A DNA stretch of 64,000 nucleotides from Bigelowiella natans CCMP2755 (GCA_000320545.1 ADNK01001417.1:2535-66534); one strand, 5' to 3'. Positions 1 to 64,000 are shown, counted from the stretch's first letter. Notes: generated by a model from the letters alone, not told the origin. Made by a program: numbers and translations.

Positions 1-2334
1 TAGTTAATATCTGACTGTGGCATCGGATGGTTCTGATCAACATCGACCTGATGAAACCAAAGAGAAAATGTGGTTGGTGGCGCAAGACAGAGTTCAGAAT
101 CAATTTGAATTTCAATGATCAATTTTGCAGTGACATATGTTGTGCAACGTAATTCCTACCCCGACGTAATGAAACTTATCTGATGGCCATCGAATTGCCT
201 CCCTGAAGGATTGATATGTGAAAGTTGAAAATGTAATGTTGGGCGCAGACACGCAACATTTCCAACTCTCTCTTTCTCTCCCCACCTATGCAAGGTCTCA
301 AATCTCTGCTTCTTGAAGGTGAATGAAATGACGGTGATGGTTTCGGGATAGCTGCCTTCAAAACAAAACAAACAATGAGATTTGTGCTAGGCCATAACGA
401 TAGGCGAATAAACCAAATCTGAGGTGATCGAATTACATGCGCACGACAAAGAAGGAGAGGAGAGAGAGAGAGAGAGAGAGAGAGAGAGAGAGAGAGAGAG
501 AGAATAAGAGAGAGAGGGATTGCGGTGGTGGTAGTAAAAACGATGATGAAAGGTCCCACCGACAACTTCTTTGAATCGGCATATGGAGAACAGTAAATTT
601 TCGAAGCTGAATAGATTGAGGACGTCAGTTATTAGGATATGGCATGCTGAGCGTCTCCTAATTTCTCACAATATTTGTTTTCTTCTCTCTCATGGAGCTG
701 CTGTCCGTAGTTACCTGTCTCTTGCATGCTCTTCAGTAACAGCTCGATCTCGTACACTGGATGGTTTTCCAAACCTGATGGATGATGACGGAAGTACAGC
801 AGATATATTAGTCTAAATTTGTTATTGATGATCATCATCATCACCACTACCACCATTCTTTATCATGATTGTGTTAAGATAGACAAGTTGTACGAACCAT
901 CCTTTATCATGATTGTGTTAGGATAGACAAGCTGTACGAACCATCCATGGGCGTCCGCAACCCACCAGTAACTCTGTGCTTCGCTCCTAAGTTGTAGATG
1001 TATATATATATATATATATATATATATATATATATATATCTGTGTGTGTGTGTTGAAGGAATAGTGAGAGAAAAGGGGAAGAGGAAGTGGTGGTAGTAGG
1101 GTTTAAAGAGAAGGTTGCACAAGTCCTACATCTTCGTCACTCCAATTAAACTTGGTATACATTTTCTGTATCATCGATGACTTGTGTACACTCTACAATT
1201 TATGGTCGTGTTGGTACTATTTAATACTTACCAAATGAAAGTGTGGGTGATTAGTGGCTCTGCATTTCGTTGATGCTATTATCGTCACTATCATTATGCA
1301 GAAGTACATCACACCTTGGGCCTCCTTCAAGCCTCGTTTCACCCCCGCTGAACACCAGTAGTGCCTGGGTGGAAGAGACACAGCAGCAGCCAGCAGATTC
1401 ATCATCAACTTGGAAGTAAAGAGGGCCTAAATACTCCCGCTTCTGACCTTCTCGTTGTTGGCTGCAATTTCTACTCCTACGCATTAGGAAAAAAATGTTT
1501 AGGTTGGGTGTCATCTGCTCTAATAAGCATCCCATGCAGTGATGTAATCAAGTACCTGCGCGGATGTGATTGAGAAAGGCAGGAAGCTGTTTTTCCTGAT
1601 AGCTCATAAGAATCCAGGGTGACTTAAAGTCATCTGCATCCTATAGCAAAACCAACTAGATGAGCGCTATGCCCGATGTGCCGTAACAATTTCGAAGCAT
1701 GGTTATCATTATTCTTCAATTGCACACGGAGGTGAAGGAGGAGGCTGAGGGAAAGCAGGCGAATGAACAAGCTTCTACTGTCTACTACAAAAAGGAGATT
1801 CGACCTCAAAGTTAGCACCCGTGAAAACTGAATGCCCTGCAACTACAATTAGGTCCTTGCACTCCCTCCACAGCTGCTCGGTTTTATCCTTGTTTGGAGG
1901 CTGAATAATGTCACGATTGAATGAGTCCATCAGCTTTCGGTGCATAAGTGATGCGTAATTGGAAGCCGGGTATATGAGGGTGGAGTATACCGTGGATAAT
2001 TCTGTTCCCCGTGCACCGTTTGTGTGCATATATGGCCCGCTTTTATCATAAGATCATTGGTCATTGAATAAGAATGCTTGTCATCACCACCGCCAGCCGC
2101 ACCACGGTACTACCACCTGTGAAATCCAATTGAGAAGTTGAGAACCAGCACTGTAGCAACGCTTCCGAGGATCAAACCCAGCAGCAAGCTGGCGGGATGC
2201 GACTGCACCCAGAATCGCTTTACCGAAAGCCTGAGGAGGAAAGGGGAGACCGCACGTCATCGTCGCATCCAAACCAAATTAGCCGAATTTTTGCATGACC
2301 TGCCTCCTTGTAGTACTGAAGAATACAGAGACAT
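1..2334 (-). CDS. DUF218-like / YOR238W-family protein, multi-exon; 3' end at or beyond the window start
   Basis: Spliced reading MSLYSSVLQGGR|LSVKRFW...(TM segment)...DLIVVAGHSVFTG...LLVFSGGETRLEGGPR...VTEEHARD.ENLLFSICRFKEVV|GSYPETITVISFTFKKQRFETLHR matches the family motifs; GT-AG introns. Confidence 0.8.
858..945. repeat. 44-bp tandem duplication, intronic
   Basis: ctttatcatgattgtgtta(a/g)gatagacaag(t/c)tgtacgaaccatc x2 with 2 mismatches. Confidence 0.9.
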
Positions 2335-2603
2335 TAAAGGAGGCGGAGGATCAGGAGACGGGGGAGGAGGGGAAGGAGGCCGCCCAACATGCACAGCCTG
2401 GGGCTATCTGAACTTCGAATTGATTTGAACAGGTTCTCATAGGCAAGAAGAAGACGATCCAGGTATTTCCCGGTATTATCCGGTATTTTCGTCTTATATC
2501 CGGTATTTGCCCGGAAATATCCCGGAGAATATCCGGAGAGAACCCACACAAAAACGCGCCAGACCCCTCCTCGTCCTGGACACGGAGTCTGGCATCGTGC
2601 CGG
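2335..2603. promoter_or_regulatory. Putative bidirectional promoter (DUF218-like / carrier) with phased CCGG array
   Basis: 269 bp between divergent ATGs; CCGG at 2470, 2480, 2500, 2511, 2522, 2533. Confidence 0.65.
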
Positions 2604-60910: not shown

Positions 60911-61036
60911 ACAGTCATTTTTTCAATCGAAGACTTTGACATAAAACGTTTCACTCACAAATCGAAATTGTGAAACGTCGTAACAATACCACACTTAACC
61001 TCCTCATCCACATGCATGGCAAAGTCAGACACATTA

Positions 61037-64000
61037 TTACACTACAAACTGTTCAAGGTCTTGACAAACTGTCTTTCCGAGGCCAGAGAGGTTTCGAAGG
61101 TGAGAAAGAATGTATTGTATTTGCGTGCTAATTTTCCTCTTTATGACATCATTTCCTGGGTATAAATAAAGATACGTATGAAGTGTTGTTCATGATCATC
61201 TACGCCTCAAAAGGGGATATAAGTAGTGGGGAAGTACATGCAGTGACAAACCTTTTTCAAATGGGTCTTTCAGATATCGCTTACATATTGTGCTGTACAC
61301 AGCAGCGATTTGCGAAAAAATCCTATTTCTGTGATTTGATCAACATATTTACGTCAAACGCCTCTTACAAAATAGATTGATAAACACTACCAAAATAGCC
61401 CTTGTTCCGACAGTGTAAATCCATGTTCAATCATCATCATCATCATCAGCAGCAGCAGCAGCAGCAGCAGCAGAAGCAGCATCATCATCATCATCATCAA
61501 AATGAGCATCATGCATCGCATTACAACCTCTGTTCTTGGTCGATAAGCCGAGACAGCTTGGTGTGCATCGACTTCGTTTGTCCCATGAGAACCCTGATGC
61601 CCTTCTCTACCTTCAATTGATCCTCCTTATCCTGATATATCACATGACAATAGATGAAATAAGTTAGGCTGCCTTCTCATTCTCATTATACGACGTCCAA
61701 ATGGCGAATAATACACGAATAAACACGTATGAAAGCCGGATCGTAGATGTTCAGGGATGTATCGTCACATATTTCTCTCCTGCATGTGTTTAGAATAATA
61801 ATTATATAAAATAATAATTATTATTATTATTGTTGAGTCTATACTCATAATAACTTTTTTCTTCTTCCAAAATTCCCTGATTATAACTGCATCATTCTTC
61901 AACTACCTCAGCAGACGAATTAGTCCACCTCACGTCCTTCTAATATGATGATCGAACAACAAAGGAAACAACAACTTCGTTCAAGGAGGAGAAGAAGATG
62001 ATGAAGACGATCATAGTGATAATAGTAGGCTGAGTAAAATGGCGCTACTACTAAGAAAGGGGAGGTCTACAAAGAGTGAATAGAGTGAGAGGTAGTCGTT
62101 GGTGTTACTGTTGTTGTAGTAGCAATAGAGTAGGTTGTGCTATGACATGTTATATTTATTTACGCCCAAGTTTTTCTCAAATATCTGAGATTTCTTGCCT
62201 CCCCCGCCTCTACCCTTTCCTCCCTCCTTTTTCTAAATCTTGTTCTCACTCCTGTTGCTTCTATTGTTACCAGCCTTCCTTCTGCCAATTGATTGATGAT
62301 ATCCACCAATTTCTTGAAAATCTCCTCCTGGTGCTGCTTGAACTCGAGGCTTACCTATTATAATTATCAATGATAAATGATGAATGATGACAAATGATGA
62401 TGATGATGATGATGATGGGTTTCAGCGATACGTAACCGCCATACAGAGACATGTACCATAACCCCTCCCACCCGGTGGTCAGGGAAAGCATTTAAGGCAA
62501 CATTGACGCACATATTGGGGTAAGAAATAATTCAAACTTCTTATTTCTGATAGATTCTCTCTCTCTCTCTCTCCCCCCCCTTCTCTCTCTCTCTCTCTCT
62601 CCCTCCCTCCCCCCCCTCCCCCCGCTGCCTTGCTTCCTCCCTCTCCCCATCCATTTTGATTAATATTTCACGACGTTCTTGAAATTGCCCAGCAGAACTT
62701 GATGCTTAGAGGGCAGATGCGAAGCTAACGCCGACCGAATAACTGGGACCTGTTCGAGACATGCGACAAGGAACAACGTCAACATGCAACACATGAGGGG
62801 CAGCAGCAGCAGGCTACTGGCGAGACTGTCAATAATGAAGAGGATGGTGACACCGACGATGATAATGATTATGCTGATGAGAAATGTCTACTACAAACAC
62901 CACCTGGGAGATGACTAACCCCAAGCTCTGTGAGGCCAAAGCAAGATGTGTTACATTGATGTTCTTCAATCTACCACCAGTGTGTAAAGCAATGCATGCA
63001 GTGTGTGAATGAACGGTTGCCAGGCCATTTGCGAGAAGCAAACACACAACGAAAGCGATTTATGATGATGATGATGATGATGATGATGATGACGACCGTA
63101 TGATGCAACCGTTGAGCCGAAACGAGGAGAGATGTATTAATAATATGTTATATATCCATGAAACGATGATGCTTATTACTACTACTACTACTACTACTAC
63201 CCCAACCACCATTCACTACCCACCCTGCTGTCTGCATGGCCCTTGCCCCGAGGACAAGCTGACACGTCTTAGAGTTGAACAATCGCAGCAGAGCCTCTAA
63301 CTTGGTTAAAATATCCGAACCCACGACCTTAATCACGACGATGAGTAGACCAACAAGAAAAACAATAACAAGAAAAGAGGGAAAATATATCATAATCACA
63401 TGAGGGCTAAGAGGAGGAGGAGGCCAAATTAAGTGAGGAGGAGTGAAATAAATCAACTGTTAGAAGAAGAATCCGAACAGTATATCAGTATTCAAGCAGC
63501 AAACTCGCCGCCATCATCATAATTTCCACAATGAACGACGATATCTATCCGCGCCAACACCTTTAACTCCGCAGCACACTCGATGTAACGACTGATCATC
63601 TTGAGTAGGATGAGAGTACTCGATACGAGAGAGAACTTGAGGAACAACCCACTGTGGACTCCATTCTGTCCATGCACAGCGAAGAAGATGACTCTTGATA
63701 TCTTCGATTCCACACCGTCCTCTCGCCTTACGGACTGAATCCTACGCTTAAATCCACCATCAATAAGGTCTTGGAACTCACGTGGCACGTCGGCCTGCTT
63801 CCACTGTTCTCCCTCCAAGCAAAGATTGAGCTGGTTGACATTCTTCGTATGAAATTCCTAGTAGCATTGTGAGCAGATATTGCTTACACTTGATAATGAT
63901 GATGATGATGATGATGGTAGTGGTGGTGGTGGTGATGATGATTATTAGAATGCTACTACGGATCTCCGCTATGCGCTATCGAACCGCCCCCCCCCCCCCA
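61037..64000 (-). CDS. VPS54: GARP complex subunit VPS54, 3' part
   Basis: LLRLFNSKTCQLVLGARAMQTAG|RLKNINVTHLALASQSL is the Vps54 domain signature; last exon ...DLEQFVV*. Confidence 0.88.

Follow-up and report, generated by a model that had tools for sequence, protein, structure and literature searches.

Are neighbouring genes in the alga Bigelowiella natans placed on alternating strands, and is the DNA between them dedicated to keeping them apart? The question is raised by a 64,000-base stretch of strain CCMP2755 (GCA_000320545.1, ADNK01001417.1:2535-66534; hereafter the window), which an earlier note, made from the sequence alone, described as a series of head-to-head gene pairs separated by islands of distinctive DNA. 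Eukaryotic gene orientation is usually near random. The window comprises bases 2535-66534 of a 66.5-kb contig in an assembly of 91.4 Mb and 3736 contigs, and all counts and rates below describe this one contig at the level of the window, not the genome. It has 43% G+C, many introns and abundant microsatellites, and tRNA and Rfam scans of the window returned no matches.

We identified 18 loci in the window, numbered here from left to right, with the strand order - + - + - - + - + - + - + - + - + -. The strand switches at 16 of the 17 junctions (p = 18/2^17 = 1.4e-4 under random 50:50 orientation), or at 15 of 16 when locus 1 is left out (17/2^16 = 2.6e-4). This reproduces exactly the gene order, strands, switch count and p value of the earlier note, and for 17 of the 18 loci the strand was verified by evidence independent of it: 14 genes show homology to Pfam or PDB entries, gene 10 is covered by transcript contigs, gene 11 by RNA contigs and gene 8 by a homologue. 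The same four lines of evidence served to rebuild the gene map, the homologue being full-length and colinear. Exons were searched singly against protein and profile libraries, and several gene ends are approximate. An ab initio chain finder that used codon usage and GT..AG signals was dropped because splice signals are too weak; it fused nearly the whole window into one model and missed known aldehyde dehydrogenase (ALDH) exons.

The nearest described case is the orientation bias of brown algae. In Ectocarpus and the FDI clade gene orientation alternates, and the passages concerned give an opposite-strand proportion that can be ‘greater than 60%’. Opposite-strand neighbours are likewise in excess here (binomial), which places the window, taken by itself, within the brown-algal definition of a strand-alternating layout (a share of adjacent opposite-strand pairs significantly >0.5). 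Against a switch rate of 62%, our chosen stand-in for the ‘greater than 60%’ given for Ectocarpales, 16 of 17 switches still has p = 3.4e-3. The alternating layout of the window is real and far more regular than the brown-algal bias. It might nonetheless be a local fluke, or a regional trait of one gene-dense contig, in a genome that is otherwise near random or mildly biased as in brown algae. A single contig was analysed; the window is one of 373 scanned in the genome, so that a p value near 1e-4 is less impressive after selection; and the genome also holds repeat-rich and virus-derived regions. We regard a fluke or regional trait as unlikely.

Strand blocks alone would make every junction a switch by construction, and the claim of alternation therefore hinges on gene boundaries, chiefly those of the long loci. 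Had same-strand neighbours been merged into long genes, the alternation would be an artefact. The earlier map was made by eye, splice signals are weak, and the ab initio chain finder did fuse most of the window, all of which lend this idea some credit. It runs against the outcome for the four long loci, each of which was tested and is one gene by homologue, RNA contig, in-frame splice or domain order. These include the loci at 19.6-29.1 and 35.5-43.8 kb, which had been singled out from the start as liable to split into several same-strand genes. Nor do 18 genes in 64 kb fall below the gene density of B. natans, roughly 4.4 kb per gene. The merging explanation is already largely refuted, and we consider it highly improbable.

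Gene 8 (19668..29180, - strand) encodes a long coiled-coil protein with an SCAB-Ig/AIR9-like domain. A profile-free search with its 309-amino-acid exon gave the homologues P0002 (1165 amino acids) and P0003 (1217 amino acids). In tblastn, P0002 aligns as 12 colinear - strand pieces that begin at 28464 and descend to 19671; the alignment of P0003 is similar. A 547-amino-acid homologue with a seemingly early end was rejected as a fragment, its source being a 3.7-kb transcript contig that carries three consecutive called open reading frames (ORFs). Members of the family (P0001-P0003, L005) are about 1200 amino acids long, with an N-terminal coiled coil and the SCAB-Ig/AIR9-like domain; their middle is long and disordered, and their C-terminal region is conserved. 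The middle is interrupted in B. natans by many trinucleotide repeats.

Gene 11 (35826..43900, + strand, ends approximate) has many exons and an ankyrin repeat match (Ank) at about 42.9 kb. One 2718-nt RNA contig (run X1) covers 37310-42963 with 14 joints, all GT..AG on the + strand, and extends 635 nt upstream and 395 nt downstream; identical joints occur in runs of three studies in all. An RNA contig that spanned two genes would not by itself prove one transcript. Here every junction is a splice and no unspliced intergenic stretch is present, and gene 11 is thus one gene. A search for repeat or transposon content in the locus gave only microsatellite matches elsewhere in the genome. A CT..AC joint at 38976-39365, seen in one run only, lies between two trinucleotide repeats and was discarded as a mis-join. 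In three runs, 72 nt of the RNA contig (record positions 966-1037) are absent from the genome between two exons at 38007-38461; they may represent a short exon within (CA)n-rich sequence, or a point at which strain and assembly differ.

Gene 15 (51888..56650, + strand) joins a LisH-motif exon to an aldehyde dehydrogenase. The exon at 51888-52169 is followed by a 79-base GT..AG intron (52170-52248) and then, in frame, by a canonical ALDH N-terminus whose own frame is shut by a TAG directly upstream. ALDH exons reach to about 56.6 kb. Gene 15 is thus one gene and would encode an unusual LisH-ALDH fusion (joined region 51888-52305), with an acidic tail on the LisH exon. Gene 5 (8866..14613, - strand) encodes Utp21/WDR36. 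The Utp21 C-terminal domain lies at 8869-9903 (E 2e-31), the second propeller at 12061-12612, the first propeller at 13462-13932 (E 2e-18) and an N-terminal exon reads at 14464-14622. These domains are in order on the - strand, and gene 5 is therefore one gene.

The other loci are shorter. Locus 1 (1..2053, - strand) is a putative gene with a weak ORF and codon signal; searches of Pfam, PDB and the atlas and for homologues returned nothing. Indirect support comes from a sense-oriented TGCGAC motif at 2262 and from a CTAG island beyond the left window edge (L002:1350-1900). Its head-to-head partner, gene 2 (2604..3506, + strand), is a mitochondrial carrier with an ATG ORF at 2604-3506 (Mito_carr, E 1e-66). 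Gene 3, ribosomal protein L37a (main exon 5317..5595, - strand), matches positions 1-85 of the 85-position Ribosomal_L37ae profile (E 4e-38). It is paired with gene 4 (6167..7655, + strand), a ribulose-phosphate 3-epimerase with an N-terminal extension and two colinear exons (Ribul_P_3_epim, E 8e-21 and 7e-18). About 900 bases that include a long (AG)n tract (4402-5317) separate the L37a stop codon from the nearest island, and may be a long 3' untranslated region (UTR) or something unannotated.

Gene 6 (16853..17160, - strand) encodes ribosomal protein L35Ae (Ribosomal_L35Ae, E 6e-25) and gene 7 (17719..18700, + strand) an Rrp8-like protein (Methyltransf_8, E 1e-59). With a ribosomal protein and an rRNA methyltransferase-like protein, both in ribosome biology, this is by annotation the sole functionally linked pair of the eight. 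Gene 9 (30417..32100, + strand), the partner of gene 8, is LSM14/Scd6-like (LSM14, E 6e-23). Gene 10 (33042..35115, - strand), the partner of gene 11, is an unnamed gene of five exons without a recognised domain. Three transcript contigs (L006-L008) align to it in five blocks at 99-100% identity, with 4 of 4 introns GT..AG on the - strand. The first called ORF of these transcripts ends at about 34034, and a second ORF of 139 amino acids with a positive codon score lies on the same mRNA (33042-34036; L006:885-1304). This could reflect a 1-kb 3' UTR with a chance ORF, a contig frameshift or a retained intron.

Gene 12 (44848..46012, - strand) is cwf21/SRRM2-like with an RS-rich tail (cwf21, E 3e-6, and ORF reading). 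It faces gene 13 (46560..47800, + strand, 3' limit approximate), a CHMP1 protein recognised by phmmer against PDB (CHMP1B, E 6e-7, chain residues 3-64). Gene 14 (48745..51032, - strand), the partner of the LisH-ALDH gene, encodes the condensin II subunit CAP-H2 (CNDH2_C, E 6e-36; CNDH2_N, E 8e-13). Gene 16 (57820..59261, - strand) encodes GAPDH (Gp_dh_C, E 2e-52; upstream exons with Gp_dh_N, E 1e-11, and the start of Gp_dh_C, E 2e-13). Its partner is gene 17 (59621..60436, + strand, 5' limit approximate), a Ras-family GTPase (Ras, E 5e-13). Gene 18 (61000..64000, - strand) is Vps54-like and runs past the contig end. It has two weak but colinear - strand matches to Vps54 (profile positions 3-31 at 63495-63857 and 113-132 at 62163-62354).

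We identified nine islands, 0.4-1.3 kb in length, that are rich in CTAG, CATG and TGCA, calling them from the combined tally of these tetramers per 300 bases. Eight lie in the eight convergent junctions: I1 (3527..4402, between genes 2 and 3; 38 of the three tetramers in 876 bases), I2 (7871..8530, genes 4 and 5), I4 (18782..19547, genes 7 and 8), I5 (32215..32951, genes 9 and 10; 30 CTAG), I6 (43970..44790, genes 11 and 12), I7 (47988..48643, genes 13 and 14; 27 CTAG), I8 (56794..57587, genes 15 and 16) and I9 (60535..60951, genes 17 and 18). None lies in the eight divergent gaps. The tetramer count thus confirms the earlier note on both classes of junction. The ninth island, I3 (15014..16350; 61 palindromic tetramers), occupies the only tandem junction, between the L35Ae stop codon and the Utp21 start, where the 3' end of gene 6 faces the 5' end of gene 5. 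A tenth lies left of the window, at the contig position given above for locus 1, behind the presumed 3' end of that locus.

Every junction into which a gene 3' end points accordingly has an island, and no divergent gap does (9 of 9 against 0 of 8, p = 4e-5). Equal frequency at tandem and divergent junctions had been named at the outset as a finding that would count against pair-bounding islands; the divergent gaps have none, and the sole tandem junction does carry one. Because the tandem junction and the left end of the contig also carry an island, islands follow 3' ends in general: what they mark is the DNA downstream of a gene end, whether or not two genes converge there. For gene 10, the one gene for which this distance was measured, the transcript contigs stop at 33042-33074, which leaves about 90 bases to island I5.

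The make-up of the islands points to how they arose. Within islands, 46 of 135 CTAGs stand between two copies of the same 4-base word (N4-CTAG-N4), against 0 of 100 in the roughly 57 kb outside; chance alone would give about 1 in 256. These copies look like small insertions consisting of CTAG plus a 4-base target copy, that is, insertion scars. They occur in all nine islands with varied target duplications, numbering 4 in I1, 4 in I2, 8 in I3, 3 in I4, 11 in I5, 6 in I6, 7 in I7, 2 in I8 and 1 in I9, and the island left of the window adds 4-6 more. Nine other palindromic tetramers served as a control and show near-zero 4-base duplication in islands, with a maximum of 5 of 83 for AGCT. The DNA outside the islands, much of it intron, has zero scars; the scar process is therefore confined to islands, which goes beyond mere tolerance in all neutral DNA. 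No long motif shared among the islands was seen.

Islands are also rich in alternating purine-pyrimidine sequence, and parts of the spacer DNA have lost TpA. TpA is nearly absent in I3 (3 per 400 bases) and in the first 1.35 kb of the contig (L002:1-1350; 1-5 per window). In 300-400 bases such tracts hold 1-5 TpA, where other DNA has about 20-30, and CATG and TGCA are in excess. Acting on AT-rich or (TA)n sequence, TpA mutation would be enough to generate CATG, TGCA and purine-pyrimidine alternation. The ORFs of the two TpA-poor tracts gave no domain or homologue, neither in I3 (searched against Pfam and for homologues) nor in L002:1-1350; for I3 this blank is weak, since TpA loss removes stops and lengthens chance ORFs. 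Hypermutation of TpA to CpA/TpG has been published for inserts of nucleocytoplasmic large DNA viruses (NCLDV) and virophages in B. natans (bioRxiv 10.64898/2026.01.13.699255), and I3 and the contig left end share its TpA loss and CpA/TpG gain. Unlike in that study, TpA loss here falls in ordinary gene spacers; 3' spacers, CTAG scars and gene orientation do not figure in the paper. Because a third of island CTAGs are duplication-flanked scars, the sequence speaks for a by-product of mutation and against a dedicated signal: insertion scars and TpA loss would largely explain the make-up of the islands.

The divergent gaps carry a signal of a different kind. A blind hexamer screen of the eight gaps returned TGCGAC, with the extended form ATGCGACAA. 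Fifteen of its 27 copies are sense-oriented and lie within 500 bases upstream of a start codon, a zone that makes up 6.6% of the oriented sequence; with p = 1.7e-11, TGCGAC ranks first among 4000 hexamers. An upstream sense TGCGAC(A) is present for 12 of 17 genes; examples lie at 5814, 5933, 14732, 35442, 46161, 51505 and 59297-59468. Utp21, whose 5' end is at the tandem junction, has its own copy (that at 14732), about 120 bases upstream of its start codon at 14613. Copies belonging to the two partners are interleaved in two gaps, at 2.2 kb and at 59.3-59.5 kb. A full-length copy at 62762 (+ strand) lies inside the Vps54-like gene, and we have no explanation for it.

In B. natans, TGCGAC(A) may serve as a core-promoter or 5'-proximal element. 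Its distribution supports the placement of gene starts and suggests that each partner has its own directional element. The earlier note had spoken of a shared promoter. Each pair does have a short 5' gap, as that description implied, but the two genes carry separate, oppositely oriented copies of the motif, which neither prove nor exclude promoter sharing.

Start codons of divergent pairs are 0.36-1.24 kb apart (<1 kb in 7 of 8 pairs), wider than the 0.2-0.9 kb first proposed. Stop-to-stop gaps at convergent junctions measure 0.7-1.8 kb and the single tandem spacer 2.2 kb; divergent spacers are shorter than both of these classes, several of the ends used being approximate. The repeating unit of island, gene, short 5' gap, gene and island is present as originally described, and no merging artefact underlies it.

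Does this unit act as a unit? Each head-to-head pair might be a transcription or chromatin unit, with the islands as dedicated boundary or termination DNA that perhaps carries a modified base, as in kinetoplastids. Such a role would suit islands that are sharply bounded, that lie at every convergent junction and that, in one case, begin some 90 bases beyond the end of an mRNA. Chromatin immunoprecipitation has also described a single H3K9me3/H3K27me3 repressive state in B. natans (bioRxiv 10.1101/2025.03.17.643675), which could in principle sit on the islands. Several observations speak against this role. First, the tandem junction and the contig left end have islands too, which therefore track 3' ends and not pair borders. 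Second, the scars account for a third of island CTAGs, have varied duplications and come without a long motif seen in common. Third, each gene has its own oriented upstream motif. Finally, annotation links only one of the eight partner pairs functionally. For a modified base in particular, a family search found no Tet/JBP match in the genome, a search in which the controls also gave no signal. We consider dedicated boundary DNA improbable.

Kinetoplastid units are long polycistrons without introns. The islands do resemble base J strand-switch regions in being compositionally special DNA where transcription converges, and the earlier note drew this parallel. It fails on polycistrony, the defining property: unlike in kinetoplastids, every unit in the window is a single spliced gene with its own 5' region, and islands also follow a tandem 3' end.

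A second comparison is with bidirectional promoters. In human, yeast, Arabidopsis and compact genomes, head-to-head pairs are a minority class amid random orientations. The opposite-strand start codons of the window, at the spacings given above, resemble such promoters. Unlike in those genomes, nearly every gene in the window belongs to a head-to-head pair and has its own oriented TGCGAC(A) copy. The scarred 3' islands are a further feature of the B. natans window, none being described in the brown-algal passages. Gene orientation in Bigelowiella was not described in any paper returned by a full-text literature search; it may be mentioned in the 2012 genome paper or its supplement, which fell outside that search.

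We consider it probable that the window is tiled by single, intron-rich, strand-alternating genes, and that the scarred 3' gaps are a consequence of this layout and not a boundary device. Under this explanation transcribed and promoter DNA would account for everything here except the islands, and insertion-excision and TpA-directed mutation may be tolerated in the islands or targeted to them. Alternation is probably held by selection against head-to-tail neighbours at short spacers, because read-through would enter the next promoter. A divergent pair between two 3' spacers would be unchanged by inversion, and breaks or insertions that fell only in 3' spacers would keep the pattern.

Several points weigh against this explanation. 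The base is one 66.5-kb contig, on which raw RNA reads (run X21) number 7, almost no depth. The strand and gene status of locus 1 are putative. Gap boundaries rest on start and stop codons, and for mRNA ends the only source is where the gene 10 contigs stop. The gaps may harbour small genes or non-coding RNAs that are missing from the map, for example at 4.4-5.3 kb, at 29.2-30.4 kb or in island I3. The arguments from selection and rearrangement are ones that we infer.

A bolder extension can be stated tentatively, as a possibility that we rate below even chances. The whole nuclear genome may be strictly alternating, with more than 85-90% of adjacent genes differing in strand. Rearrangements would have the divergent pair as their unit, and 3'-3' spacers would be the sole acceptors of breaks, of mobile-element insertions that leave CTAG scars and of TpA hypermutation. 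The pattern would be self-perpetuating because the divergent pair is symmetric under inversion. To our knowledge, alternation on this scale, if true, would be the most regular gene-orientation pattern in a eukaryote.

The strongest described bias that we found is just over 60%, in brown algae. If the layout holds genome-wide, a free-living alga with a 91-Mb, intron-rich genome and about 19 of 20 neighbours alternating would be a natural experiment, one that would inform the study of transcriptional interference, promoter sharing and termination. Annotation would gain simple rules, each pair having a single promoter gap and a single scarred 3' gap, and transgene design would be steered to compact two-way 5' gaps. 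The layout also ties CTAG scars and TpA mutation together by showing where both are confined.

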